Origin: Guillardia theta CCMP2712
Lineage: Eukaryota > Protista > Cryptophyta
NCBI RefSeq assembly: GCF_000315625.1
Contig: NW_005434662.1
Coordinates: 278,307 to 342,306, forward strand
Direction of reading: 5' to 3'
Length of the DNA: 64,000 nt
Each line of letters opens with the position of its first letter. Positions within the stretch are counted from its first letter, which is position 1. Positions 1-22,739 of the stretch are shown here, piece by piece. The translations under genes were made by a program, and so were the position numbers. The notes under the pieces are model-generated. The model saw only the letters and a program-made list of their open reading frames with translations, was not told the origin of the DNA and ran no database searches.

Positions 1-677
1 GAATGATCACAGGAAAGCTGGAATATGATAGATACCGTGAAGGCAGAAACGTTCTCCAGGGCAAGGGACCCAGATGATGAGGGGATGAGAGAGCGAGAAA
101 TGGAAGGAGGGAGGGGACCGAGTTTGAGAGGAAGAGAGACAGAGAGGGAGGGAGGAAGCGATCACGAGATCTGCTACAAGTTGACTTCACTTCGCAAACG
201 CTGCATGCAGTTGGCTCTCCTTGCGGTTCATACCTCCATGGCAGGGGCTGAAGTCAATCCTCGGCCAGGTTTCAGGGGCCAACTCAATCGAGGGAACAAT
301 CATTTCATTTATATTTCAAATTAAAAACAATAATATTGAAACACTGATGAAATTTGTCCTTTTCCGTTATAGTCAATTTCGTGGGGACATTCGATCACCC
401 CTGCTAATTGTACTCAAATCAGGTCAAATTAGGGGGTTGGGGTGGTCGCCTCAGTTTGAGCCCTTTCATTGACTATAAGGATTTTAAATTGACTATAAGA
501 CCAAGACAGCCCCGGCCGGGCCTGGGCGAGTACTTCGGAAGGGCCAGGATTCACGTACTGAGGCCTGAACTATAAACTCAAAATCAAATTTTACTTTCAT
601 TTTTCAAACAATGATATTGAATTTTCACGACAGAAACCGAAAAGGATATCCGCATACGGGGGGTTGGGGGGGTGAAT

Positions 678-686
678 GGCGGGAAA
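678..686 (-). promoter_or_regulatory. Candidate E2F/DP site (TTTCCCGCC) ~380 bp upstream of the Treslin ATG
   Basis: GGCGGGAAA on + reads TTTCCCGCC on -, the canonical E2F consensus. Replication-initiation genes are typical E2F targets. The same 9-mer occurs at 27370-27378 before the mTERF gene, so specificity is uncertain. Confidence 0.45.
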
Positions 687-1058
687 TTCCGTCGCACATG
701 GCGAACGAGGGGCACGATAAGAACGAGTACATGGCACATGGGGAGGAACATAAACCAATGAGGGCAGCAGAACTCTTGTGTGCTGTTGTGTTGAGCAGGA
801 GATGAAGATTCTGTGATGATGATGAAGAGGAGCTGAATGGGAAGAACCAGGATAAGGGGATTGTTGACCTAGGACGAGGAAGTAGTTGAGAACAAGGAGG
901 TTCTGTTTTGTGGCAGAGAGCAAACGAGGAGGGGATTTGACTGTCACGATAGGAAAGGAGTCGCCTTCTCCACTTACATCGCACACTGCCGAATCATGGG
1001 GCGGAGGATAGGTAAAATGGCAACAACCCGCTAGTACACGTGGGCCGGTCGACGACAG

Positions 1059-4000
1059 ATGGACTCTGGCCTGCAGACTGTGTTTGTGATAGATTCCGAT
1101 TGCTTTCAAGAGAGAACTTTGAGCGAGAAGTAAGGGCAGACTTCGCTGCTGTTTCCTCTGTTATGCATCTGGATTGATTGCGTGACCTTGTTAGGTCTAT
1201 TGTGCTCTCCCTCCTTCGGATCCTGCGATATTACAGAACCCATGGAAATCACGTTAGGTGAGAGCTCTGATTCTTCCTTTATGTTACAATCTCAATCGAG
1301 ACATGCTGCGTTTCTCCCGGTCAAGGATCGTCTTCGTTCATGACCAGGTTTCTGTCAGGTGGGGCTACTCCTTGTTCTCGTCGACAAGACACTGTTCGCC
1401 AAGCGAGTTCCTTCCCGGGCGGAAGCCGCAGAAGCTTAACCTTGACTCGACTGAAGTCGCGAGCGTAAAAGCACAGATCGAGGATGCGCTCAAGTCTGTC
1501 AAGAGATGCTATGAGGACACATCAGTGGCTCTCAACACGTCGGCCCACTCGAGCGACAGTTTGCGGGAGGTTTTCACTACGTTGAAGGTAGTCCTCGGCG
1601 ATTTCGAGTGGAGCTCGTCTGTGGAGAACAAGAATGACAGGTATCGCGTTATTGCAGTCGGCAGAGTATCACTGTTTTGCGCAGGAGGTACAAGTTTTCC
1701 AACAAACAAGAAGCTGTGCTATCGCAACAACCGATCCGCTCCAAGGCGAATAAGCTGCACAACGTGTTCTTGTTCACGACACGCCGATTCTCTCATTCGG
1801 AATCGGAGATGGAAAGTCTGCTGAATGACCTGAACTCTTCTGCCGTCAGGAAAGCATACAGGTCCAAGAACATTGCGTTGCATTGGGTAGATACGTGTTA
1901 CGGTCGTGAGGCTGAATCTCGGAAATGCGATGCTATCTGCAGTTTCTTGCGCTATACAGGTGGGGCAACATACCATATTGGCCAACTCTTGCAATCTTCG
2001 AGAGTTCTACCCTTCGATCTTGTCTTCGAATCTCTCTGTGATGGCAAGATTCAACAAGACTGCTCCCAGTCCAGTACAACACTGATCTACAACGGTCTGG
2101 CCGATGATGTCAAGCGCATTGTTGATGGAGGGATCATGGTGGACATCAAGGAGGGTTTCGGGACTGCGAGCTCCGATGGTTCAGCAGAGAGCAGTCATGA
2201 TGAGTCTTCATCGCCGGCCCTGACTTTGAACCGATTTTTTGGGCGCTCGGTGGAATGTAGACTGGTGGTGGAAAAGGCGATCGATCGCTTGAAGTTTCCG
2301 TACGAGCTTCTGGAGAGCGAAATGTACATAGTCAGAGAATGTAACACTACACTTGATCCGGCTTCGTCAAATTCTGAACCTAGCCATATGAATTCCAAGT
2401 TCTTGCAGGTATGCCGGCAGATTTTCTCATCGGCGGGTTGACAGCTTGTTCCAGCTGATGGTCAACTTGCAAATAACGAATAGAATCTTGCTTGCACAGC
2501 TCTTCAGCGGCACTGAAACGATGCACTGTTTGCTGTACCCGATCAAGATGAATCTTGGTGGGTTTCAGCAAGTCAACATGAAAGATCCGACGGTAGCTTA
2601 CACCATCTATACTTTTGTGAGCGATGAACCTTAGTCCAGATTCTCGATCAATTCACAGAAGATTGTGTGACTGTTGGCAACGCTCTTCAACGAAATACAA
2701 GTGAGCAAGCTGTTTTTAAGTTCGACCTCCTAGTTTCCCTTTTGTTTCGATTTTGTGTCTTGTTTTTCGTCAATCGAATGGTTGACATCCGGTTGCAGCG
2801 GCGACTTTGAACGAACAAGTCAACACTGTCTTTCGTCTCAATCAGGCAGAATTTCTAGAATACCAGAGCTGCCGGTGAAGCGAGATGAGATTTAAGGCCG
2901 TCGCTGACCCAGCTTGCCTATTGCCATCCAGTGCTGCTGAAGATAGTCGAAGGCAACGAATCGAAATGTTGAAAGAGAAAGTTTCCAAGTCTCCAATGAA
3001 AGAACATGGAAACACAGGTCACAGGCTGACATATATTCAAGGCCAGTGCTTACTCAATCATGCAGGGACTGTACAGATTGCACAACAAAAGGAGGATATG
3101 AGTGCTGAAATGATCTTCGACGAACTGGACAAAGTCTTTAAGATGCAAGTTGAAGATTTTAGCAGCCGGAAGCCAAACTGCCTCCTTCGAGAGGTGCCTC
3201 ATTAATTTCCGTTCAACTTACCTTGCGTTTTGTCCTCTACTTACACTTTCCTTCCATCCTCCTGCCTCCTTGTTCTTCCTGAAATGTTGGAAACGCGCCT
3301 GAAATGCAATTTCCAGATCCTTCCAAGCGCTATCGAGCAGTTAGTCAAGAGCTCCTTGACAGACATCGAGGCAAAGACGCAAGTCTTGAAGCACGTCTGC
3401 ACCAAGTGGATCGTGAAACCGAAGGAATGGAACACCCTCAAGGTTGCAAACAATCAGGAGGCAGAGAAGAGAAGGTTCGAACTGCAGGCCCTTCTTCGCC
3501 TAGAGGTCCCTCTCTTGCGCGCTGGCCTTGGGGAGGCTGCAGAGTTCGATCCCATCCCAGACTCACAGCTAGACAACGTCAAGGCCCTGATGAGCAAGAT
3601 CTTTGTACATATGAACGATGAGATGCGACGTAGATACTGCCGAGAGGTTTCCTCGCAAACTCTCTTCCTCTGTTTCTAATAGGCTCCCTCCAGGTTCTCT
3701 GCGAACTGTTCGGTCAGTCTCTGCCCATCACCTTGGAGAAGCTCTGTAGCTCGTTTGACATCGAGTTGTCCAGTCTGACGGCCGGAGAGGGTACGAATGG
3801 TGTCCAAGCTGAACCCGCTGCCCTGACTGCATCTGAGACGCTGACTCTTGGGGAACAAGCAGAGGAAATAGACTGTTCTAAAATCGTCCGTGGGTTGAAC
3901 AGCAGACATCCTGTTTCATCGAGCGATGGAAGGAAGCAGCAACTTAGCGTCAGGTTGGGTTCTAAACAGTTCAAAGCGAAGACGATAAAACCATCCAAGA

Positions 4001-5241
4001 GCAATGTCTTGGAACCGAGCAACGTGCGGGACAGCAGCAGGTTGACGAGGAGGAGCAACAGTGTCTCGGCCGCTACCTCGCTAGACTCGACAAGCTCACT
4101 GCTCGAGCAGCCTCGGAGGGTGAGTGTCAGTCTCGTTGAGAGGTATGCTCGGGAAGAGGACGGGGCTCAGCCCAAGATTCTCGACATGGTGACACAGCAA
4201 TCCTCGCATGCTGCCGTTCAGGCGAAGGATAACTGTAAGAGCCCCATTGCCCCCGCAGCTTCTCGCGTGCTCGTTCCGGAAACTCCTTGCAAGAAGGAAA
4301 CATTCAGCAGCCCTCAAGCTGTCCGAATGCCGCAACCTCCAGCAAGCGAGGCGACTCCCAAGCAAGACAAGAAGTGTGACGAGTCCTCTGTGCGCGTCCT
4401 AGTCCCCGAGACCCCCGTTACCAAGCAGTGCCAATATCGCAAGACTTTGACGTCAGGGAAGAAGCCAGTCAGCATCGCCAGCCTGGTGAGTGCTCCTTCT
4501 CTTCCATGCGACCTGTGATCATCTCCTCAGATGCAAATTGAGGAGAATGCGGGTGAGCCTGACTCTGGCTGTTCCTCAAGCTTGTCCCGCCCAACCCCTG
4601 ACGCTTCTGCTGCTGCTGATCCGCAGCTCGATCAGCTCAACCCCAGAATCATTGACTTTGCCGAGAAGAGCGATGAGGTTGTCGAGAACAAGAAGGGTGA
4701 GCAGGAAGAAACATGCAAGACGTCGAAGCGACCAGGCGGCGAGGGAGGCCGACGCAAGAGCAAGCGAACCAAGTGCAACCCTGCTAACATCTCAGAGGAT
4801 TCGATCAACGTGAATGATCTCGTTCTTGTTGCCTCTGAAAAAGTCTTGAGCAGACCCTCCAAGAGGGGTGCGAAGGCCGTGGCCTACTCCAAACACTCTC
4901 TCGCCAGGTGGCTCGGCCCCTTCCGTGTCCTCTCTGTGTCTCCCCAAGCTCAGAAGGTGGAGCTGGAACTGCCTGAGCTACTCCCCTTGTCGAGCAGCTG
5001 GGCCCCGCTGTCTGCCCTCGTCAAGTTTGACGCGGGAGTGTCGTTGAGGAACAGGCTGCAGGAGGGAGCAGCCAGGCAGGTGCTGGACAAGAAGAAGCAG
5101 AAACAGCGGGCTTGCGAGAGCTACCTGGTGCTGCGAGGAGAGGACGTGAAGACAGGATGCAGGTGGACAACGAGGGAGGAGCTCGAAGAAGAAGCCCCGA
5201 GGTTGCTTTTAATGTTCGAAAGAAGGCAAGAAAAGTTGTAA
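1059..5241 (+). CDS. TICRR: Treslin/TICRR (Sld3-like) replication initiation factor, multi-exon, with C-terminal retroelement-like SH3+chromo module
   Basis: Spliced N-terminus MDSGLQTVFVIDSD..SLLRILRYY..HVRWGYSLFSS resembles the Treslin vWA-like start (LLLDT..LRLLTYL..VHWAFKFFDS). NVFLFTT and IALHWVDT are Treslin-N-like. KRRFELQALLRLEV matches the Sld3/Treslin-domain motif (RECQLQVFLRLE). There are two VPETP CDK sites. Phase-0 intron 4486-4530 joins the last exon, which ends in TAA at 5241. Confidence 0.75.
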
Positions 5242-5371
5242 TTACAGACAGATCAAACAAGGCGAAGCATCAGGGCTATCTACTAGAAGTTTGGTGGTGG
5301 GTTCAGTTGTGCACAATAGTGACGACGGAGATGGTTATCGGCGAGCGCTCAGTATCGAGTCATAATGTGCC

Positions 5372-6100
5372 TCATTGCCATATGAAGTCTGCATCGTCGA
5401 ATTCAACCTCGCCAGGCTGCTCGTCCGCAAAGAACTGAGCATCGTCGAAAACGCACACGATCGGATCGTTGCTCTTGAGCTTCTTGCTCTGGTTGAACAG
5501 ATCTTCATCCCTGTTCTCCTCCACCTGTAGGCGCTTGTTGCCAGCAGCAGGAATGTCTTCGGACGAGCTCTCCAAGCTCGAGTTGAGCTTATCATACTCC
5601 ATCCACAGGAAGCGCCGGGCCTCCCGCCATTCCGCTGCCGTCACGGCTCGCCCCTTGTTCGCTCGCTGGAAGCAGTTCCAGGTGTCGTTGACTCCCCTCA
5701 GGAGCTCCAACGGATCTTTCGGCCATGGTTGGATCACACATTTCATGCTCTCACCGGTCATGCTGTTCTTGCGAACCATTGGATCGGCACCTTCAGTTCA
5801 AGGAGACGAGGAAGGGAGGGATTTGAAGCGACCAGCTCAATCTTGGGAGTGTGCCAACGGTACCAACCAACTACGTCGAGAGAGCCTCAAGATAATCCGC
5901 GTCTTCCCTGCAGAAGCGACGTCAGAGCAGACCATGGGGCACGTCACGAGAAGCGTTGGGGACGACATCAATGCGCACGAGCGCTTTCTCCGTCCCTCCT
6001 GTCCATTTACCCCCTTGCCTTGAGGGCAATCACACGCCTTGGGCAATCTTTTCACTTCCAGCCATCACTATCAGCCACCATCCAGCACCGTATATCTATC
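5372..6100 (-). CDS. Hypothetical protein (spliced; 5' end uncertain)
   Basis: The 135-aa last exon (ORF 5372-5779) has coding-like composition and an acidic tail; GT-AG signals lie upstream. No recognisable domain. Confidence 0.45.
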
Positions 6101-6379
6101 GCCTGCTCCTCTCACCACTTCGAATGGTCTCTTAGGATCTGACGCCACCTCAGCACCCTTCCCACTTCTTCTCTTCTCTACCTGCTCTTCCAAGCTCCCA
6201 TCTTCTCTGCTAGTCTCATCTGTCCCATCCCAACCTATCGTCTAGCCACCTTTCCTCACCTGATCTGGCGCGATCTAACTTTCAATCACCCGATCTAGCC
6301 CCTCCTCTCGCTTTTTTCTTTCAATCTCGTCTGATCTGATCCCAAAACCCATCACATCATACAATAAAGGTCAGATTAC

Positions 6380-6389
6380 GCCACGTGGC
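6380..6389. promoter_or_regulatory. Perfect G-box palindrome GCCACGTGGC in a divergent intergenic region
   Basis: 10-bp palindrome. CACGTG cores also occur upstream of genes at 1037-1042, 18417-18422, 24208-24213 and 27365-27370. Confidence 0.3.
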
Positions 6390-7191
6390 CTCTCCTCTCC
6401 TCTCCTCTCCTCTCCTCTCCTCTCCTCTCTCTTCTCCTTTTGTCTTTCCTCTGCCCCGCCATCTCTTGTTTTGTGAGAAATTTCCTTCATTTCCTCTTCC
6501 GATCTCCATGTTTGAAAAAATAATTTCTTTTTTCCTTCAAAAAAGAAATTTCTTCGCTCATTTATTGGAGGTGGGGGTAGAAAAAGTACCCACCATTTCA
6601 ACTACATATTTACTTTTTTTATGGGGGTGATAGTACTGATTGGTGTTTTGATGGTAGGGTAGTGTGTCGGATTCCAGGAGATTCAGATTATAAAAACACA
6701 TTTGGCTCGAAAAAATGCAAAAATGCATCGCTCAAGGGTATATCCACAAAAATGATATTTAAGAATTTAAAAACTCGCCTTTTTGATTTTAAAAGGTTTT
6801 CCCTGTCCCCCCAGGGCAGCTTAGAGTCACCTCTCCAAGAAGTCCGCCTCAGATAGAACTTATCAGAAGCGCCCGGATCTATCATCACGGATATCACTGA
6901 GACCCGGCCCGGCGGCCCGGCGGCCTCCGGGTTACAGTTTTAGTTAACTTTGAGTGGACTGTTGTGCCCGATGGCAACAGAGCCAGGGGAGTCGCGAGAG
7001 ATCATGGGCAGGAGCATGAGCAGGAGACGAGGAGGAGGTAGCAGATGCTTCATCCGAGACCAGCGACTGACTGCAGCTGCTGTCTTTGGTTGCTTCTCTC
7101 GTTCTCTCTACCAGGACTGAAATTGGCTCCATCCGCCGCAACCTTGCATCGGCAGGAAATCGTTTGCTGCTGAAGCAGGCTCTCGCTCGCA

Positions 7192-8874
7192 ATGATCATT
7201 TCTTGCCTTGCTCTCGGAAGCAGAGGTGATGTCGAGCCACTGCTGGCTCTGGCGGAGGGACTGCTTCTCAAGGAAAGTCTCCAGGACTTGAGCGTCAGGA
7301 TTGCTTGCAGGAACGAAATCTGGAACGACCTTGCAAGCTGCTCCCCTCCCCTGCCGCAAGTGTCTCACTTCCCCATCAGAAGCTGCTCGGTCGACATGGC
7401 GGTTGCGCTGCATGCAGAAAGACGAAGTCAAGAGCCTCCCAGCAAGGCGGTGGGCAGGGAGGATGTGAAGCGATTCGAAGAGGAGGAACGAGCGGAACTG
7501 CTTCAGGCCTGTCACGGGGCAGACGTGATTGTCTGCAATCTCTTCACATTGGAAGGATTTCACATCAGTGAGAAGATGCGCATCCCTTGTGTCATTGTCT
7601 CCCCGTGCCTGCCACCGAATCGAATGCCTGCCACGTTCGAGCGGCAGTTCATGGATGAATTCCCCCTCCTGTACAGGAAGCTCAAGGCGTCTGCGAGAGG
7701 CTTGGAGGATGAGGATGCGCTTTCACGGCCCGTCTGCTGGTCGGACGTGACCGCATGGATGTGGAGGGTGTTTCTCGATGACCATGGCACATGGCGCGAA
7801 CAATGCCTTGGGTTGCCGGCAATTCCGCTAGACAAGTTCGAGGAGGAGGGAGGAGAGCCGCTGCCGCAAGCTCCGCTCCTCCTGCTCACTGTCTCCCAGC
7901 GGCTGCTAGCTCTTGACGAGAGTGATCAGTTCCTTGCATGGAAGTCTTGCGCTCGATTTGTGGGGAATCAAGTGAGGGAAAGTTCAAAGTCCGTGGAGCT
8001 TGACAAGGAGCTGATGTCATTCCTGTCTTCAAGTCATTCATTGCAAGCGGGTGACAGGGTAGAGACGTCCGCCCCCTCAAGGACGGTGTGCGTGTGCTTC
8101 GGTTCCATGCCGAGCCTGGGGTTTCTTGAGAGTGCTGAAGAAAAAGATGTCGACAGTGCAGAAGCGTTTCTTGTCACGATCATGAGAGGCCTCAAGAGTT
8201 TGAATCTCAGATGCGTCTGGATGCTTCAAGGGTTCCATCCGACCATCAAGAGTAAGGTAAGCTACATCCCTTCCTGCTTTACACTGAAGTTGCCATGTGT
8301 GTGGCAGCTTGAACGAGCGGCAGGAGCTTGTGTTCACCACCACTTCTTCACTTTTGTTGCTCATCCCCATGCTCTCATCTTGCCACACTGTTTCGCCATG
8401 ATTCATCACGGGGGTGCTGGATCAGTTGCGGCTGCCATTCGGCATGGCTGTATGCACGTGAGGGACTGGCTGTTCGCTTCCTCTCCTCACACTTCTGCAG
8501 ATTGTCTTCCCCCTGACTTTCGACCAAATATACTGGGCAGTATTACTGGAAAGAGCAGGACTAGCGTGCAGAGCTCAACCGTGGCGTAGCGTTACTGATG
8601 AAAGCATAAAGTCTTCCTTGCAGTTTGCGATGGATCATTACGACATTCGTCTCGCCATGAAAGGAGGCCAAAGTTGACTCGTTCTTAGTACGCTGTCTGA
8701 CTGACTTCGTTGTTGTTAGCTGATGAGAAGGATTCTCCGCTTCTGCAATGGAAGATGGTGATAACTGACGATGCAAGGCTGCATTCTAAAACAGTCCGAA
8801 GGAGCTGCAGAAGGAAGAGGAATGTGGCCGAGAAAAGAGCACTGAATGGATGGAGCGAGTTTGTCGTCAAGTAG
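7192..8874 (+). CDS. Sterol 3-beta-glucosyltransferase-like glycosyltransferase (GT-B fold, UGT80/GT28-like); 3' end approximate
   Basis: N-terminal ALGSRGDVEPLLALA, central VCFGSM, and C-terminal PHALILPHCFAMIHHGGAGSVAAAIRHG followed after an intron by IVFPLTFDQIYWA (UDP-sugar-binding signature). Confidence 0.85.
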
Positions 8875-9885
8875 CAGCATCCAGCGAGTGAAGAAATCGG
8901 AGTACACGGCACCTGAAACCGTCAACAAAAACAATCCAGGAAAAAGGGAGGTACCAGTACCCGAGGTAAGACAACGGACAGAACGTTCTTGTTTTATTTT
9001 ACAGCAGATTGAATAGCTACAGGTGTTGGTATGAGTCGGTGACATTTGTGCATGTGGATGGACGTTCAGCTCGATGGAAGAGGCGAGAGAAGAGCGTTCG
9101 ATCGTCAACTCTGCCACCAAGATGCAACCAACCATCAGCATGTCTGTAACAATCATTCGACACACAGTCTGACAAACATAAGTTCTTTCATCATGGTCTC
9201 AATGACTGCTGCAGCAGAATCGCTGGAATCACATCAAGATCACATCGAGGTTTTAAAAAAGTCCAGCTAAAGACCTTGCCATTGACATTTAAAGACCTGT
9301 TCCCACTTGCTCCCTTTCTCACTTAATACCTCCTCATAGTCTGAGTCTGCAACCCCCCTCGATCACTCCTTGTCTATTGTGACATCGTCTCCTGCTCTAC
9401 TCTGCATGCTCCTCCCATCCCCCGTTGCTCCTTCCTCTCGTTGTTTCATTCCTGTAACACCGGCGACCTTCCTGTCTTATCTCCATATCCTTTTCTCAAA
9501 AAGAAACACCTTACCACCCCTACCTCTCCCGGAATTTCACCGGTCATTGTACTTCCTCGACCGTTGTTAGGCCCCATGGCTGCAGGTAGCAGCATGCCAG
9601 CCTTCAAGGCATGCTTCTACACCCCTCCTACCTCCTCCTCCTCTTCCTCCTCTTCCTCCTCCTCCCTCCCTCCTTCCTGCCTGTCGGCCACCTAAACTTC
9701 TACCACGACGTTGACCGGTATCTCCTTGACAGCTGCAACCAGAGCAGCAACAGCACAGGTCACAGTCAAACAGCCTCCCCTGCTCTCTTGCCCCCCAATC
9801 ACCAGCTCGTTCTTGGTCTTGCCAGCATGTCTGACTGAGTCTACGGCGATAAATCCTTCCTGCCGCTTCTCCTCTTGTCTCTGCG

Positions 9886-12846
9886 ATGAACTCTCGTACC
9901 TCGGCCTCGCTCCTCCTCTTGCTGATGGTGCCGTCTGCAAGGGCCGATGGATGGTGCCAGGGGAACAAGGCCACCATGAGCTGCTGCAATCCAGCCAACG
10001 GGGGAGAAGCAGGGGTCTACTTCCTCCCTATCTTCCCCATGGAGTATGAGTGGGACCGAGGGTTTCGCGCCTTCTTGTACCTGGTGGGTCTGCTGTGGAG
10101 CTTTTTGGGTGTTTCTGTGCTCAGCGATGTGTTCATGACCGGCATCGAGAGGGTGACGAACTCGACGAGGAAGGTGAGACGGCCGAAGCTCGACTCCAAC
10201 GGCAGAGCGATCCTGGTGGACGGTCAAGAGCAGTACGAGGAGGTGCAAGTCTTGATTTGGAACCCAGCGGTAGCCAACCTCACGCTCATGGCCCTGGGGT
10301 CGTCGACCCCGGAGATCCTCCTCTCAGTCATTGAGATCTGCTTCTCAGGCTTCTACTCGGGCGAGTTGGGGCCAGGGACGGTCGTTGGGTCGGCCGCGTT
10401 CAACCTGTTTGTGATAACTGCACTCTGCATGCTCTCGATCCCTAAGTCGGAGACGAGGAAGATAGACGGGTTCCTCTCCTTCTGCATCACCACCGTCTTC
10501 TCAGTCTTCGCCTACCTGTGGGTTTACATCTCTGTGATGGACAACGTGGTGACAGTGGCGGAAGCTGTCATCACCTTCTGCATGTTCCCACTGCTGACGT
10601 TGATGGTGTACATGGCGGACAACGGGCTCTACTCGAAGATGTTCTACACCATAGCAAGAATCCGACCGGACGAGCTCGACGATGAGACCCCGCCGCCTGC
10701 ACCCATGACATCTACCCCACTAGAGTCCTTCCGCTCCTTCTCGGCGCTTCAGACCAGTCGCTCGATCATCGAGGACGGAGGGAAACTCTTCCTGCGGCAG
10801 AACCAGTCTCGCGTCAAGTATCGTCACCTTGCTCTTCAGAGCCTCATGGGAGGCAAGAAGATCACGCCCGAAGACCTGCAGGCCCCGGAGCTCTACATAG
10901 AGAAGAACCTGATGGAGGCAGAGGCCGAGTCGCTTCTCCCTGTGATCCAGTTTGAGAGCCCGAACTTCTCTTTCCTCGAGACTGTCGGGATTGCCAAACT
11001 GGTTGTGACGCGTCAGGGGAACTTGTCGGTGGAGGCAGATGTTGAGTACCAAACCAGAGATGGCACAGCAAAGAACTCGGTGCACTACGAGCAAACCAGC
11101 GGCGTCCTCCACTTCGATCCCTTCGAGACTGAGCAGACCATCTTGATTCGTATCCTGCATGACTTGGAATGGAACGAAGATTTGGAGTTCACGACGGAGC
11201 TTTCGGTCGTGGATTCTCAGCTCGTGAAACTTGGGGGGATGTATCAGGCCGTCGTGACCATCATCGACATGGACGGGCCGGGGGTCTTCGAGTGGGTGGA
11301 GAAGGAGCCTCAGTTCTTTCTCAGCTCGGACAGCGCGGCATACCTCCAGCTGCAGAGGATGAAGGGATGCACTGGCGATGTCAAGATCAGGGTGAGGACA
11401 GTCGACGACAGCGCGCAGGTCAAGTTGCTGGCTGGTCGTATCATCTGCTCACGCGGTATCCCTTGCAGGCAGGACAGCACTTCGTCGGCATGGATGAGTT
11501 GGTGTCCTTCAAGGACTGTCAGGCCTCCAAGACTGTCAAGGTGTCTGACTTACTCCTTCCTCCTTTCAAGCGCTCTGACATCTCCTCAGATTCGCCTCCA
11601 GAACTTTGACAAGCCTGAGGACGCGGGGGAAGACTACATGGTAGGCTGTGCTGCCGGTGGCCGTGGCTGACCTTGTTGTGCAGGTTCGATTTTTTGTTAA
11701 GATACAAGACATGGACGACGGTTCAGGCATTGTGATCAGCGAGTACGACACGATAGAAGTGCGAGTTGAGCACAGGGAGCAAGCCGACGAGGACGAGGAG
11801 ATCACCTGGACGCAGCAGTTCAAGCAGGCGCTGAGTGTCAACGGAGGTCAAGACATGGCTGACGCCAGCGCTACTGGGCTTGTGCTGCACTACATCTCCA
11901 TCACCTGGAAGCTCGTCGCTGCCTTCATCCCTCCTCCGTCCATCTGGGACGGCTGGGCGACCTTTTGCGTCGCCCTGGGGATGATCGGGGTGGTGACCAC
12001 ACTGATCAACGACCTTGCCTCCATCTTCGGCTGCATCATCGGGCTCGAGGACCCCGTCACTGCCATCACCATCGTCGCTCTCGGCACCTCCCTCCCCGAC
12101 ACGTTCGCCTCCGTCCTCTCCATCCGGGCGGATGACAACGCTGACAACGCCGTCGGGAACGTGACGGGCAGCAACTCCATCAACGTCTTCCTCGGTCTTG
12201 GGCTGCCCTGGACGATTGCGGCGATTTACTGGCACTACACACCTCCGACTGCGAGGTTGGGAGAGGAAGAGCTGAGGGAAACCTGCTGCGAAGATGGCGT
12301 GGAAGAGGCAAAGGAGATGAGGGGAAGAGGGAGGGAGAGAGAGAGGGAGCGAACATACAAGATAAGGCGGGAGCGAGGGAAATGGCGGAGGAGGGAGTTG
12401 AAGAGAACATGATTGATTTCGAGTTTCAGGTGGTTGGAAACTTATCAAGGGACACCCGGCAACCGTCCAAGAATGTATCCAAGCGTGCAGAACAACAATG
12501 CTTTCCTGCCGGAGAACGGGGGCAACGGCGGGTTTGTGGTAGCAGGAGGGAACTTGGGGTTCAACACTATCTACTTCACGATCCTCACCGTCATAGCCAT
12601 CTCCACTTTGCTGCTCAGGCGCTTCGTCTATGGACACGAACTTGGAGGAGAAGGAATGATTAACAAAGTTTCGGTAAGCGAGGAGGATACAAAGATGTCG
12701 CCTCATGGTCGGTGCAGGCTGCTCTGTTCCTGCTGTTGTGGTTCGCCTATATCATAGTCGCAAGCTTACAGGTCAGCCTCCATCTGCTGTTCGCTCACAC
12801 TCACAAGAAGCAGACTTACTATCCAAGCTCCTTCCCCGCCTTCTAG
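9886..12846 (+). CDS. NCX: Na+/Ca2+ exchanger (SLC8/NCX family) with signal peptide and Calx-beta domains
   Basis: Alpha-1 repeat ANLTLMALGSSTPEILLS / GTVVGSAAFNLF; Calx-beta (VEYQTRDGTAK..YEQTSGVLHF); alpha-2 repeat ALGTSLPDTFAS / GNVTGSNSINVFLGLGLPW; ELGG C-terminal motif. Spliced last exons end in TAG at 12846. Confidence 0.95.
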
Positions 12847-15859: not shown

Positions 15860-17782
15860 CTAATCCCTCGTCATGAAGTCGCCTCCGTTGTGCATGTCCC
15901 AGCCCTGCAGGTCCGTCATCAAACCCCTTCTCCATTCCCACCGCTGGCTCACATTGACAAAGGTGTCGGTGATGGGCTCGCCAGAACGATGAAGAGTCCG
16001 GGCCACCAACTGCCATTCAAAGCTCAACCCCCCCGCCAACAGACGCTCACTCCCGCTCTCCTCGGTACCCACCTCCTCCGGCAGCTCCTCGTCTTCAAGC
16101 TCCCCTTGGAAGCCGAACGGATCAGCCTTCCCGTTGAGAGATCCCCTGGCGATCTGACCCCTCACATCAGTCTACCCCTCCCTTGCGCCTCCTCCCCCCT
16201 CCCCCCACCTGCTTCGTCAACGGGTCGTCGCTCTTGGAGCACTTGCCTGGCCTGCAGTCTGGTGCCTTGCAAGCTGTGTGCCTCCGCTCGAGCACCTGCC
16301 ACGCCCACGGCTCAGCCCTCCGACGCTCCTCCTCTTGTCCTCCTACCTCCTTCAACGGACATCGGCTGCACGTCCGCCTGCATCGCTCGACAAGCGGCGT
16401 GACCCTGGGAAACCCTTTCTTGCGGTCGTATCGAGCTTCCAGCACGCTTTTCGTCACCGTGTTCATCAGCTGCTTCTTCATCTGCCTCGTAGACGGGAAC
16501 GAGTCCGAGGGATACCCGTACGAGTCCTGCATGTACTGTGCGGCGTCTCCCCACACCATCTTGAGCAGCTCAGGATCCAGCGGAGACTTGTGGTCCGACC
16601 CGTACTCCGAGTGCGCGAACTGCAGCAGCCGCTGGTCTTGCAGCCTGAGCACCAGCGTGCAGCCGTCAGGTTGCCGGGCCCGCCTCTCACACCCTCCCTG
16701 ACTACCTCTCCTTGTCCGCCTCGGACAGTCGGGCGTCCTTGCTGTAGAGCGGGTCTGTCCTGTCTCGGTCCGCCTGGCCGAAGAACGCTCCTGCCTCCGA
16801 GAAAGGCGACGCGCTCCTCGGGTCCCTACATCCTGCTGTCAGCAGCGACCTCCCCGCCCCAGCCCCAGAGTCAAGGCATCGTACCTGGGAGATCTGAACC
16901 TGTCCCCAGTCCCGTCTTTGTGCTGCTGGTCGAAGCCCGAGATCCAGTTGTCTCCGAGGTCGGCTCCGTCGCTATGAGGGTAACGCTGCGGGACAGTGTT
17001 GTGCATGTTGGGCTCGATTCCGGATCTCCTGTCGCGCTCTTCTCGCTCATAGCTGTAGTCGCTTGACTCGCGAAGGTACTTCTCGTAATCCTCGATGTCT
17101 CGCGCAACCTGTTTCTTCCAGCGGTCGCACTCATCTGGATCAGGCTTGGTGGTACAAGCAGGGGGAGGGTTGTCGTAGGTAGGACGTTGTCTTGCAACAT
17201 GATTGTGATCTTGATTCACGTGACCTTCATGTTGTTCATGACTGCCATGATGTTCGTTATTCCCATGACTCTCTTGTCCCTGATGATGTTCTGAATGATG
17301 CTCCTGATGACTGGTTGAATGTTCAGAAGCTCCTCCGCCGGCATTGAACAAGGCTGTGCTCCTGTGTCTCTGCCGCCCCTCTGCATCAGCTCTACTCCTC
17401 CCCCTTCCCTCCCCCTTACCTGCTTCAACCCTGCTCCAAAGGTCCCTCGCCTAATCTATCGTTCNNNNNNNNNNNNNNNNNNNNNNNNNNNNNNNNNNNN
17501 NNNNNNNNNNNNNNNNNNNNNNNNNNNNNNNNNNNNNNNNNNNNNNNNNNNNNNNNNNNNNNNNGAGCAACAGAGACAAAGAGAGACAGAGAGACAGACA
17601 GAGGCAGACAGCGAGAGATAGGGAGGGAGGGAGGGAGGGAGGGAGAGAGGGAGGGAGGGAGGGAGACTCACCGCGTGTTGCCATCCGAGGATACAGAGCA
17701 CAGCGAGCGAGCAGGCGAGCAAGCTGAGCGCTACGTGATGACGGGAAGCTCGGAGGATGCTGGGATGGAATCGGTATGCCAT
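15860..17782 (-). CDS. His-rich signal-anchored protein of unknown function, paralogue A
   Basis: Exon 1 MAYRFHPSILRASRHHVALSLLACSLAVLCILGWQHA then gtgagt; His/Glu-rich linker; Cys-containing C-terminal part. GT-AG splicing keeps the frame (..DPLYSKDARLSEADKER/LQDQRLLQF..). Intron 1 contains an N-gap. Confidence 0.7.
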
Positions 17783-20565
17783 GAATGCAGTAGGAGCGGA
17801 AGGTCTGTGAAGGGCTGGAAGGATCAAGGGCTTGACGCCAAGAGTGGATTGTGCCTATCACCATGTTCAGAAATGTTTTCGGCCAGCAACATATCCCCTT
17901 GTGCTCACTTCTACCCTTTTCTTCTCTGTCGCTAGCTTTTCTCTTCCCTTGCTTGCCTTGTCCTCACGCACAAACTCCCTCGTTCCCTTCCTTCAGATTC
18001 GTCGCTGCATTTCCTCTGCCCTTCCTCAACATCCCTGTGTCGCCTTGTCTCTTCAGGTTCAGCACAAACCTTTTCGAAACTTTCCTCTTTGTTTTCAAAG
18101 CTTTGAAATGATATTGAGTCAAATCAAATTTTTTCGGAATAAAGATTTATAAAGTTGTATGATGACACGGAAATTTCTTTTTTTTTTCGTCGGTTCCGGT
18201 TAAAATGCAACATGGGGCGAGTGTGGGCGAAGAGAAGAAACAAGCGATGCAGAGAGGGGGGGGGAGGCTGGAGAGGGAGACACGCACACAGGGAGGGAGG
18301 GAGGGTGGAAGTATAGCAAGTCGGAGAGGGAGTATGACAGTGCAGGGGTAAAATCAAAGGGGAGATGATGTGGTGGGCCATGAAGAAGAGGAGATGATTT
18401 TAGAAAGAGAGGAGGACACGTGGAGAAAGGATGGCACAGAAGGAATCAACGTCAAAGCGCAGGGGAACATGCAAAGGCAGATATAATGAGATAGGAATGG
18501 GAATGGAGAAAGAAACGAAGGCAGGTGTAAGAAGATTACAACGAAGCGAGGAGGAAGGAGAAACTGTCAAGTAAAACAGGAGGTCTATCTATTTGCGTTT
18601 CCTACATGTTGTGTGCTGGTTCCACGTAAAGGATATCAAATTGCTCTTTCTTGGAGTGGTTACCCTGTTCCCCTTGCAATGAAAGTGCTGCCTCACAACT
18701 CGTTAAGAAACATAACATCATAACATCCGTATTGCATTGAACTTGCTGTATGCCTGTACTGACATGACAAACACGACGTCGGTTTCAAACAGAGAGAAAC
18801 AAGTAGATCTTGAATGATCTAAATATGCAAAAAATGTGGAGGTAAACGAAGTATAGTTTCGAAATCACAGTTGAACCCCACCGCCTCCCTCGTCCTGAAG
18901 ACTTACAGCAGATAAATATTCCATCACAGAACTACTCCACTCCACTTCTTCATGTCATCTGGTCAGCCTTCATGAAGTCTACACCGTTGTGCATGTCCCA
19001 GCCCTGCAGGTCCGTCATCAACCCCCTTCTCCATTCCCACCGCTGGCTAACCCGAATAATAGCGTCGGTGATGGGCTCGCCATAGCGGCTGAACGTGCTC
19101 ACAAGATTGCGTTGCGAGGCAACAACCTGCCATTCAAGACTCAACCCCCCCGCCAACAGACGCTCACTCCCGCTCTCCTCGGTACCCACCTCCTCCGGCA
19201 GCTCCTCGTCTTCAAGCTCCCCTTGGAAGCCGAACGGATCAGCCTTCCCGTTGAGAGATCCCCTGGCGATCTGACCCCTCACATCAGCCTACCCTTCCCT
19301 TGCGCCTCCTCCCCCCTCCCATGCGCCTCCTCCCCCCTCCCCCCACCTGCTTCGTCAGCGGGTCGTCGCTCTTGGAGCACTTGCCTGGCCTGCAGTCTGG
19401 TGCCTTGCAAGCTGTGTGCCTCCGCTCGAGCACCTGCCACGCCCACGGCTCAGCCCTCCGACGCTCCTCCTCTTGTCCTCCTACCTCCTTCAACGGACAT
19501 CGGCTGCACGTCCGCCTGCATCGCTCGACAAGCGGCGTGACCCTGGGAAACCCTTTCTTGCGGTCGTATCGAGCTTCCAGCACGCCTTTCGTCACCGTGT
19601 TCATCAGCTGCTTCTTCATCTGCCTCGTAGACGGGAACGAGTCTGAGGGATACCCGTACGAGTCCTGCATGTACTGTGCGGCATCTCCCCACACCATCTT
19701 GCGCAGCTCAGGATCCAGCGGAGACTTGTGGTCCGACCCGTACTCCGAGTGCGCGAACTGCAGCAGCCGCTGGTCTTGCAGCCTGAGCACCAGCGTGCAG
19801 CCGTCAGGTTGCCGGGCCCGCCTCTCACACCCTCCCTGACTACCTCTCCTTGTCCGCCTCGGACAGTCGGGCGTCCTTGCTGAATGCGGGTCTGTCCTGT
19901 CTCGGTCCGCCTGGCCGAAGAACGCTCCTGCCTCCGAGAAAGGCGACGCGCTCCTCGGGTCCCTACATCCTGCTGTCAGCAGCGACCTCCCCGCCCCCAG
20001 CCCCAGAGTCAAGGCATCGTACCTGGGAGATCTGAACCTGTCCCCAGTCCCGTCTTTGTGCTGCTGGTCGAAGCCCGAGATCCAGTTGTCTCCGAGGTCG
20101 GCTCCGTCGCTATGAGGGTAACGCTGCGGGACAGTGTTGTGCATGTTGGGCTCGATTCCGGATCTCCTGTCGCGCTCTTCTCGCTCATAGCTGTAGTCGC
20201 TTGACTCGCGAAGGTACTTCTCGTAATCCTCGATGTCTCGCGCAACCTGTTTCTTCCAGCGGTCGCACTCATCTGGATCAGGCTTGGTGGTACAAGCAGG
20301 GGGAGGGTTGTCGTAGGTAGGACGTTGTCTTGCAACATGATTGTGATCTTGATTCACGTGACCTTCATGTTGTTCATGACTGCCATGATGTTCGTTATTC
20401 CCATGACTCTCTTGTCCCTGATGATGTTCTGAATGATGCTCCTGATGACTGGTTGAATGTTCAGAAGCTCCTCCGCCGGCATTGAACAAGGCTGTGCTCC
20501 TGTGTCTCTGCCGCCCCTCTGCATCAGCTCTACTCCTCCCCCTTCCCTCCCCCTTACCTGCTTCA
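15874..20565. repeat. Tandem duplication: ~15874-17427 vs ~18972-20565 (offset ~3138 over most of its length); second block 17665-17837 vs 22024-22196
   Basis: Near letter-for-letter identity including introns; identical ORFs are reported at 16871/20009 and 17319/20457. Confidence 0.95.
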
Positions 20566-21913
20566 TCTCCTCCCCTAGCAGCTTCATGGTCTCCCACTCC
20601 ATCTTCGCCATGGCAGACATCATCTCCATCTCTCGATCCACGCGCCTCGCCCCGGCCCTCCTCTTCTCGCCGGTCCCCTGGCCCCCTCCCCGGTCAGCTC
20701 CCTTGCCTGCCTCTTGCACAGCCCGACGTCGGGCGACGCCTCCTACCTCGTGGGCCTTCTGGACCAGCTTCTGCGCTCGGCGCATCTCTGCTCTCAGTGC
20801 TGGAGGCTCCCCGTAAGTCTCCTTCCTCCTCCCCCCCCCTCGGTCTTACCGTCCATGTCTGCCTGCCGCTGGGACCGCTCGCCCTCAACCTTGGCCCTGA
20901 GCGTCTGCCCCTCCCGTCAGCCCCTTGCATCACCCGCATCCCTCCCGCTCGTCCTACCGACGCGACGAGATCTGCCTTCCTCATCTTCTCGACATCCGAC
21001 CTCTCCTGCGACCTGACGCGGTCGATCCTCCCTCGGATCTCTCGCAGCTTCTCGTCCTCGCTCCGAAGCCTCGTGCTCGCTTCTCCCACATCAGCTCCGC
21101 TCTGCACATACGCCAGCCTCACGTCACCAGCCCCCGAAGCCCCCGAGGCTCCTCCTCTGTCTCACCCTTCGCCTCGACGACCTACGGTCCTCTCGCGTCA
21201 GCAGCTTGTCCGCAGACGTCACGTCCGCCTCAAGCCCCGCCATCTCCGACTGCTCCCCCGTCAGGCTTCCTCGCCCTCTCTCCTGCGCCCCACCTCCGCA
21301 TCGAGACGCGCGAGCGACACTCGCCGGCTCCCCTGCTGCTTGAAACACTAGCGAAGAAGTGCCAGATGGGCTTTGAGTTAGAGCATGTCGATCTCTGGAA
21401 TTGTAACATTGAAGCTGATGTAAACCGGGTCTCTGGTCTCTTTACCAAGCAAGTAAGATAAGCTACAACACGGATTATCAGCTTCTTTTGCCCCTCCCCC
21501 ATCTCCCAAGTCTCAAAATCCTCCGCGACATTGCAACCCACAAGCCCAAGCCAACGAGCTTGATCGTTTCTTCAGAGGCAACTGCCAAGAGTCTCACTCG
21601 AAAAGCTCACATACAACTTGTTGACGAACCAGAGTGTAGGCGTCGCCCATGTTGTCCTGTGATGCTGCCAGAGATCTGAGAGCAGAGTAAGTAGTGAAAG
21701 ACATACTTGAAACAGGTACATCAGCGCCTCTTGCTGCTCTGTCTCGTACTTCTTCTTCTCAAGGTCCGCATGCAGCAAATCCCACAACCTGCTAGATCGA
21801 CCGCCAGGNNNNNNNNNNNNNNNNNNNNNNNNNNNNNNNNNNNNNNNNNNNNNNNNNNNNNNNNNNNNNNNNNNNNNNNNNNNNNNNNNNNNNNNNNNNN
21901 NNNNNNNNGACTG

Positions 21914-21974
<61 letters not shown>

Positions 21975-22141
21975 CAGACAGAGAGAGAGACACACACAGA
22001 GAGAGAGGGGTGGGGGGTGGGGGGACTCACCGCGTGTTGCCATCCGAGGATACAGAGCACAGCGAGCGAGCAGGCGAGCAAGCTGAGCGCTACGTGATGA
22101 CGGGAAGCTCGAAGGATGCTGGGAGGGAATCGGTATGCCAT
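18950..22141 (-). CDS. His-rich signal-anchored protein, paralogue B (extra coiled-coil exons; apparent 1-nt frameshift near 19884)
   Basis: Near-identical exon 1 and body to paralogue A. Additional exons at ~20560-21340 (QGSRRVSLARLDAE/SEMAGLEADV..RSEDEKLREIRGRIDRV). The terminal exon has diverged. Confidence 0.6.
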
Positions 22142-22739
22142 GAATGCAGTAGGAACGGAAGGTTGGTGAAGGGCTGGAAGGATCAAGGGCTTGACACCAT
22201 GGCGCGATCACTCCTGCGTCCACAGGCTGCTAAGTAACATACAATAGCTTTTTTTCGCAATGGCTCACAGATATATACTTTGACTTCGGAGCAAACTAAT
22301 TACTTTGCTGTCAATGGTTATCTCTGTGGACTTCGCTCTCGTACAGGGCATGGAAACATGTATCTTAAGCTATAATCATCACCTGCTCAGCCTCCCTCGA
22401 ATCTTTCGAATGTATTGCTAAGTCATAGAGTCCCATAACAGACAGCATTTGAAATCTTTCGCGGCAAAGAATCTTGTCAAACTTCGACTCTCCAAGATCG
22501 TCCTGTCTACCGCTGAAAGCCCAGGAAGCTCTGTTTCTGTTCACCTCTCTGGAATAGTTTCAACGTTGCTGCTTGAAGAATCAGCTACTTCTGCTCTTCG
22601 CTCCTTCCCTTCTCTGGTTTACATCGGACATGGACAAAGATGAAGAGTCAAACCAAGTTCGACACTGTCATGCTCCCCCACCCCCCTTTCACCCACTAAA
22701 CCACCCCCCTTTTGTATACTTCCCGTTCAATATAGGAGT

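Follow-up and report, generated by a model that had tools for sequence, protein, structure and literature searches.

An unannotated gene of Guillardia theta that probably encodes a Treslin/Sld3-like protein with a conserved, lineage-specific C-terminal tail

Structure of the gene

The subject of this study is a reading frame of 236 codons at 4531-5241 in a stretch of 64,000 nucleotides from the genome of the cryptophyte alga Guillardia theta CCMP2712 (hereafter the window; all positions are those of the window, and features lie on the forward strand unless otherwise mentioned). An earlier note on this DNA had interpreted the reading frame as the C-terminal part of a chromovirus (Ty3/Gypsy) integrase that had become fused to the origin-firing factor Treslin/Sld3. 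According to our analysis, 4531-5241 is most likely the final coding exon in a gene of approximately 964 codons that spans 1303-5241 and is unannotated; this gene probably encodes a Treslin/Sld3-like protein. The portions of this protein encoded by exons 1-4 and exon 5 are referred to as the body and the tail, respectively. The G. theta scaffold JH992976.1 (GCA_000315625.1) is 100% identical to the window, runs of N aside. A position in the window equals the position in the scaffold locus minus 25, and the gene at 1303-5241 corresponds to 1328-5266 of the locus. GCA_000315625.1 bears no gene call over 1-5371 of the window and hence none over 1303-5241, which looks like an unannotated and probably essential gene.

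An exhaustive phmmer search with the 236-residue exon against 1.84 billion representative proteins yielded a single match at E ≤ 0.001. The matching protein, designated here as P0001, is a transcriptome-derived sequence of 961 residues from Hanusia phi (EukProt EP00960), a member of the sister genus of Guillardia. When P0001 was compared with the window by tblastn, four collinear pieces were found at 1360-1653, 1683-2450, 3296-3649, and 3691-5229. This collinearity, together with introns of 44, 908, 47, and 45 nt that all begin with GT and end with AG and with summed exon lengths that are a multiple of three, suggests a gene of five exons. The first exon (1303-1640), taken from the first in-frame ATG, has a GC content at third codon positions (GC3) of 0.71 and shares 63% identity with residues 10-107 of P0001. 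The second (1685-2408) is 59% identical to residues 103-354, and the third (3317-3646), which carries the main part of a region resembling the Sld3-Treslin domain (STD), is 71% identical to residues 337-454. Exon 4 (3694-4485) lies in the piece of 56% identity at 3691-5229 and comprises the end of the STD-like region, a low-complexity linker, and a candidate for the TopBP1/Dpb11-interaction region (TDIN). Exon 5 (4531-5241) ends with the stop codon at 5239-5241. Intron 1 (1641-1684, 44 nt, GT..AG) changes the reading frame from 1 to 3, and intron 3 (3647-3693, 47 nt, GT..AG) from 2 to 1; both are supported by P0001, as the Hanusia protein skips them and is continuous across each. Intron 4 (4486-4530) is considered separately below.

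The second intron (2409-3316, 908 nt) is approximately 20 times as long as the other introns of the gene and has no counterpart in the Hanusia protein. We noticed open segments in this intron with a coding-like GC content by codon position, for instance 2455-2616, which follows a possible GT..AG intron of 46 nt. These segments have no counterpart in the Hanusia protein, and Pfam gave nothing credible for them. They could be extra exons, alternative exons, or inserted DNA.

Conservation of the tail in Hanusia phi

The fusion of body and tail, which the earlier note had suggested seeking in related species, is present in H. phi: P0001 carries both parts in one reading frame, collinear with 1360-5229 of the window. 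The tail aligns with residues 728-959 of P0001 with an E-value of 4.6e-63, 56% identity, and four gap columns. Exon 5 is an open frame of coding-like composition, with GC contents of 0.58, 0.45, and 0.68 at the first, second, and third codon positions, similar to exons 1-4. An insert of foreign composition was ruled out, as the GC content and GC3 of exon 5 match those of the other exons.

The conservation between Guillardia and Hanusia varies along the tail. The first 89 residues of exon 5 are poorly conserved, albeit with a short conserved block at 4639-4662 (71% identity over residues 33-46, compared with 35-47% in the surroundings). This block lies within a probably disordered stretch and might act as a short linear motif for docking. 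A cluster rich in Lys and Arg, resembling a nuclear localization signal (NLS), was read from the translation at 4717-4773. The first conserved subdomain (4810-5040), which contains the tripeptide GPF at 4915-4923 and is the candidate for an SH3-like domain, shows 63% identity without any insertion or deletion. The second (5077-5226), which is chromo-like, ends 4 residues before the stop codon and shows 58% identity, with a single gap column near its C-terminal end. The linker preceding the two subdomains is only 35% identical. This pattern of conservation points to folded domains under constraint.

Beyond H. phi, we detected no relative of the tail. Word searches with the P0001 tail (among proteins of 528-1680 residues) and with the whole of P0001 retrieved only P0001 itself. 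Scans of metagenomes (two) and of viral contigs (one) with the tail brought up no relatives, and exact look-ups of the 236-residue open reading frame (ORF), a neighbouring ORF, and P0001 gave no record. The PDB, searched by sequence with the exon and with a profile of two sequences, yielded no match at E ≤ 10, and scans of the window for Rfam families and tRNAs found nothing. Altogether, we conclude from these comparisons that the tail is a real, conserved module restricted to the Guillardia/Hanusia lineage.

Origin of the tail

All peptides that had been quoted in favour of an integrase tail are indeed present in the translation of 4531-5241. GPF, one of the two forms (GPF/GPY) of a tripeptide that chromovirus integrases carry C-terminal to their catalytic core (PMC3605345), occupies residues 129-131 of exon 5. 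Across the six translated frames of the window, W-x-GP[FY] occurs once, whereas GP[FY] alone occurs 13 times, so that the tripeptide alone is weak evidence. In the alignment of plant chromovirus integrases by Weber et al. (PMC3605345), a basic region is followed by GPF/GPY at columns 311-313 and by a chromodomain beginning at column 377. Of the Pfam families, Chromo alone was reported for the tail, and the match, at 5077-5226, starts 51 residues after GPF and covers positions 5-53 of the 53 in the profile. Its E-value was 0.15 with a 147-residue piece and 0.056 with a 70-residue piece (12.4 and 13.8 bits, respectively), about half the cut-off of 25.1 bits, and the Hanusia tail had no Chromo match at E ≤ 10. 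The degenerate chromodomain claimed previously is thus retained as an end-to-end resemblance in Guillardia, with a score below the cut-off and no equivalent in Hanusia.

The remainder of the integrase reading fared less well. No Pfam match at E ≤ 10 was found over 4798-5040, where the GPF region had been assigned to an integrase SH3-like domain, and 4798-5238 gave Chromo only; note that no positive control confirms, for the former negative, that the Pfam copy used includes a Tf2-1-type SH3 model. Neither the HHCC zinc finger nor rve (the D,D35E core) was detected in the exon, P0001, or the open segments of at least 130 residues in the window. Descent from a retroelement found no support, as no polyprotein was retrieved at E ≤ 0.001 from the 1.84 billion representatives or by the word search (528-1680 residues). 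Nevertheless, this result is compatible with an old capture, because approximately 145 residues at about 30% identity are near or below the significance limit for 1.8 billion sequences. The earlier statement that no retroelement parts lie nearby was borne out: none of the 146 open segments of at least 130 residues matched reverse transcriptase (RT), RNase H, integrase-core, gag, or chromo families at E ≤ 0.001. No repeats of at least 25 bp were found in 1-9000, and no long terminal repeat (LTR) in the window.

Structure prediction was of little help. AlphaFold2 models of the tail had a pLDDT of 42 with a single sequence and 40 with a two-sequence alignment, both being unusable. When the second of these was compared with the PDB by Foldseek, a tool that had been proposed for this exon, no match was found at E ≤ 0.001, the model itself being uninformative. 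As for the sub-threshold Pfam matches, unrelated ones with E-values of 0.008-0.2 appeared in about one third of approximately 25 exon or ORF queries, a rate exceeding the nominal expectation. Because unrelated matches of similar strength are frequent, single sub-threshold E-values prove nothing alone.

On these grounds, the tail could plausibly, though with a less than even probability, be host-derived or have arisen de novo, unrelated to transposable elements. It would then be a diverged reader of the chromo/royal family or an orphan fold, and GPF and the order of motifs would be due to chance. All tests of homology to retroelements failed, sub-threshold Pfam matches of the observed strength are common noise, and GP[FY] alone is frequent in the window; furthermore, the C-terminal regions of Treslins are lineage-specific (PMC8807876). 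What this explanation leaves to coincidence is that W-x-GPF, the spacing, and the chromo-like C-terminal end occur together in the order of a chromoviral integrase. No cellular family was detected for the tail either: the likeness to the cellular chromodomains of HP1/CBX is a weak end-to-end match to the Chromo profile (12-14 against 25.1 bits), with none in Hanusia.

It is plausible, although less likely than not, that a fragment of a Ty3/Gypsy chromovirus integrase (an SH3-like GPY/F domain plus a chromodomain) was captured before Guillardia and Hanusia split, was domesticated as the final 145 residues or so, and now tethers the firing factor to chromatin. The GPF tripeptide stands within the sole W-x-GP[FY] of the six frames, and Chromo, as the sole Pfam family for the tail, is matched to the end of its profile, 4 residues before the end of the protein. 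The distance of 51 residues between GPF and the chromo-like start may be compared with columns 311-313 and 377 of the plant chromovirus alignment (PMC3605345). Furthermore, chromoviruses are the sole clade of Metaviridae to occur throughout eukaryotes (PMC3670739), and cryptophyte genomes contain retroelement integrases fused to RT (PMC12220804). Against such a fragment stand the missing SH3-like or integrase match over 4798-5040, the Chromo score at half the cut-off and its absence in Hanusia, the failure to retrieve any retroelement protein or PDB entry, and the lack of RT, integrase core, and LTR in a window where the GC content of the exon is not unusual. Should this origin hold, only the C-terminal part would have survived, free of stop codons and frameshifts and without the zinc finger and the catalytic core. 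The C-terminus of a chromovirus integrase is therefore the leading candidate for the origin of the tail by virtue of the order of the basic cluster, GPF, some 50 residues, and the chromo-like end; it is plausible but unproven and, in our estimate, less likely than not.

Identity of the body

We consider it fairly probable, judging from the sequence, that the body belongs to the Treslin/Sld3 family. The Pfam family Treslin_STD (PF21855) matched residues 349-473 of P0001 with an E-value of 0.0025 and 18.2 bits, over positions 32-153 of the 154 in the profile. The matched stretch maps to approximately 3326-3747 of the window and falls on the best-conserved exon. In Treslin/Sld3, the TDIN lies downstream of the STD and holds two sites for cyclin-dependent kinase (CDK), namely T969 and S1001 in human Treslin (PMC8807876). 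Correspondingly, downstream of the STD-like region, the Guillardia protein has two VPETP motifs with similar flanks, at 4273-4287 and 4402-4416. They are spaced 43 residues apart, and Hanusia has kept the two of them. This pair, which provides two Ser/Thr-Pro sites C-terminal to the STD, is a candidate for the CDK-phosphorylated sites of the TDIN. The assignment to Treslin/Sld3 made in the earlier note is weakly supported by the order of the STD-like region and the two VPETP motifs, the former with a sub-threshold match on P0001; single exons of Guillardia gave no match.

An alternative is that the body is unrelated to Treslin/Sld3 and represents a nuclear protein that evolves fast in the lineage of Guillardia and Hanusia, which we regard as unlikely but worth weighing. 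The evidence for the family is a single sub-threshold match, and a spurious match of similar strength (Gene66, E = 0.008) was obtained with an intronic part of this very gene. No further relative came out of the word search with P0001, and no Sld3 or Treslin chain out of the PDB profile search. On the other hand, the Treslin_STD match extends over 122 of the 154 profile positions, it coincides with the exon of 71% identity, and two conserved Thr-Pro motifs follow at the place of the TDIN in the family.

The junction between exons 4 and 5

The upstream open segment (3634-4515) and 4531-5241 are in the same frame. Between the two is a stretch of 45 nt (4486-4530) that starts with GTGAGT, ends with CAG, has a length that is a multiple of three, and contains the sole in-frame stop codon between the open segments. 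Its size is in the class of the short introns of the gene (44 and 47 nt), the removal of which is supported by the Hanusia protein. We propose this stretch as intron 4, in phase 0. P0001, however, keeps exactly 15 residues at the place of the 45-nt stretch. Identity between the two species is limited to 6 of these 15 residues, against 25 of the preceding 30, and four of the six identities fall on the initial three positions and the final position of the stretch, where the splice signals are. Conservation of the GT.AG.. and CAG signals would produce identities at just these two ends. The simplest reading of the two sequences would be a minimal intron, kept in frame by the Hanusia transcript, whose removal in Guillardia is required. 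The phase-0 intron of 45 nt claimed in the earlier note thereby stands as to its GT..AG signals, frame, and size class; its splicing in Guillardia is presumed, and the Hanusia protein reads through 15 codons.

It is improbable that the Treslin-like protein of Guillardia lacks the tail, with the 45-nt stretch retained, the protein ending at the stop codon therein, and 4531-5241 being untranslated, translated from its own ATG, or confined to a minor isoform. The equivalent 15 residues in the transcript-derived Hanusia protein imply retention at least there, and the start of the exon is an ATG in Guillardia, matched by a Met in the Hanusia protein. Nevertheless, 236 open codons with a coding-like GC3 of 0.68 and 56% identity to Hanusia with four gap columns only argue against a separate tail, as do the strong GTGAGT..CAG frame, the usual intron size of the gene, the fall of identity from 25/30 to 6/15 inside the stretch, as expected of an intron, and the 12 nt between the stop codon and the ATG, which leave no room for a promoter. 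An independent gene starting from the ATG at 4531 was rejected for want of intergenic space and because the frame of Hanusia is contiguous.

Proposed function and comparison with known systems

The explanation we favour, with somewhat better than even confidence, is a Treslin/Sld3-like gene with a lineage-specific, conserved docking tail. The body would comprise the STD-like region followed by the two conserved Thr-Pro motifs, which would serve, once phosphorylated by CDK, as docking sites for a TopBP1/Dpb11 partner. Exon 5 would add the poorly conserved charged linker, the basic NLS-like cluster, and the conserved module of approximately 145 residues, which may consist of two small, probably beta-rich subdomains. 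We infer, purely by reasoning, that the tail would anchor the firing factor to chromatin or to some nuclear partner. Such a docking tail would have a parallel in animal Treslins, whose C-terminal regions are likewise lineage-specific.

Several of the observations weigh against this explanation. The Treslin_STD score of P0001 is below the Pfam cut-off of 24.2 bits, and no match to this family was found when the exons of Guillardia were searched one by one (note that the domain spans intron 3). The N-terminal CIT (vWA) and M-domain (Ku70-like barrel) families that Treslins possess (PMC8807876) had no Pfam match in exons 1-2 or P0001 at E ≤ 1 to 10. To these are added the 15 residues kept by P0001 at the proposed intron 4, the unusable models of the tail, the frequency of unrelated sub-threshold Pfam matches, and the conjectural nature of the docking role.

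Treslin/TICRR of animals and plants and Sld3 of fungi resemble the Guillardia protein in having an STD (or STD-like region), two Ser/Thr-Pro sites, and a lineage-specific C-terminus (PMC8807876). The C-terminal region of animal Treslin has docking activity related to chromatin, involving BRD2/4 and Chk1. The Guillardia protein differs from the known members of the family in its below-cut-off STD match and in the lack of a CIT or M-domain match. Furthermore, the C-terminus of animal Treslin is largely unstructured, and the region C-terminal to the TDIN has been reported to be absent from yeast and plants (PMC8807876), whereas the Guillardia tail ends in a conserved module of some 145 residues. 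If the body is a cryptophyte Treslin/Sld3, a core replication gene has been left unannotated in a reference algal genome, and the family would gain structured, lineage-specific C-terminal modules outside animals.

The tail shares with the C-terminus of chromovirus integrases the GPF tripeptide, the basic cluster upstream of it, the spacing of about 50 residues, and the chromo-like end. A comparable enrichment of basic residues upstream of GPF/GPY is known in plant chromovirus integrases (PMC3605345), which is a resemblance only. Unlike those integrases, the tail has no significant integrase or retroelement match and lacks the zinc finger, the DDE core, RT, and LTR. We regard as doubtful the more specific scenario in which a Treslin/Sld3 firing factor captured the targeting end of a chromovirus integrase (GPY/F plus a chromodomain devoid of the aromatic cage) before the split of Guillardia and Hanusia, kept it under selection, and reused it to place the initiation of replication on particular chromatin. 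If the retroelement reading were true, the event would be of the same kind as that which gave rise to the integrase-derived genes of vertebrates. GIN1/2, KRBA2, SCAND3, and NYNRIN keep a recognisable catalytic core. In vertebrates, these are single-copy host genes that stem from integrases of Metaviridae or endogenous retroviruses (ERV) and are drawn with an INT domain (PMC3670739). The Guillardia tail would, unlike them, keep only a possible C-terminal targeting fragment, on a replication factor, in a cryptophyte alga. We found no paper that links Treslin and chromodomains in such a fusion, and none that names both Treslin and Guillardia. A chromoviral tail would amount to a new variant of domestication, in which the targeting end of an integrase alone was joined to the origin-firing machinery, and would offer a handle on the tie between origin firing and chromatin in a lineage without defined origins; the present evidence shows only a conserved orphan tail.

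Other features of the window

Upstream of the gene, at 300-640, are AT-rich stretches of similar wording in surroundings of approximately 48% GC. On the other side, an annotated gene of 135 residues without a Pfam family (5372-5779, reverse strand) is convergent on the Treslin-like gene. As merely 130 bp separate the stop codons of the two, their 3' untranslated regions must be very short or overlapping. The ORF at 9886-11667 encodes a Na/Ca exchanger, the best match of which is GUITHDRAFT_103027 of G. theta CCMP2712 and the second best a protein of Hanusia phi. Two segments at 15871-17427 and 18970-20565 form a direct duplication of approximately 1.6 kb with 95.7% identity, beside gaps of 100 N at 17465-17564 and 21809-21908. 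A second pair of repeats, of about 270 bp and 88% identity, is located at 17572-17840 and 21930-22199.

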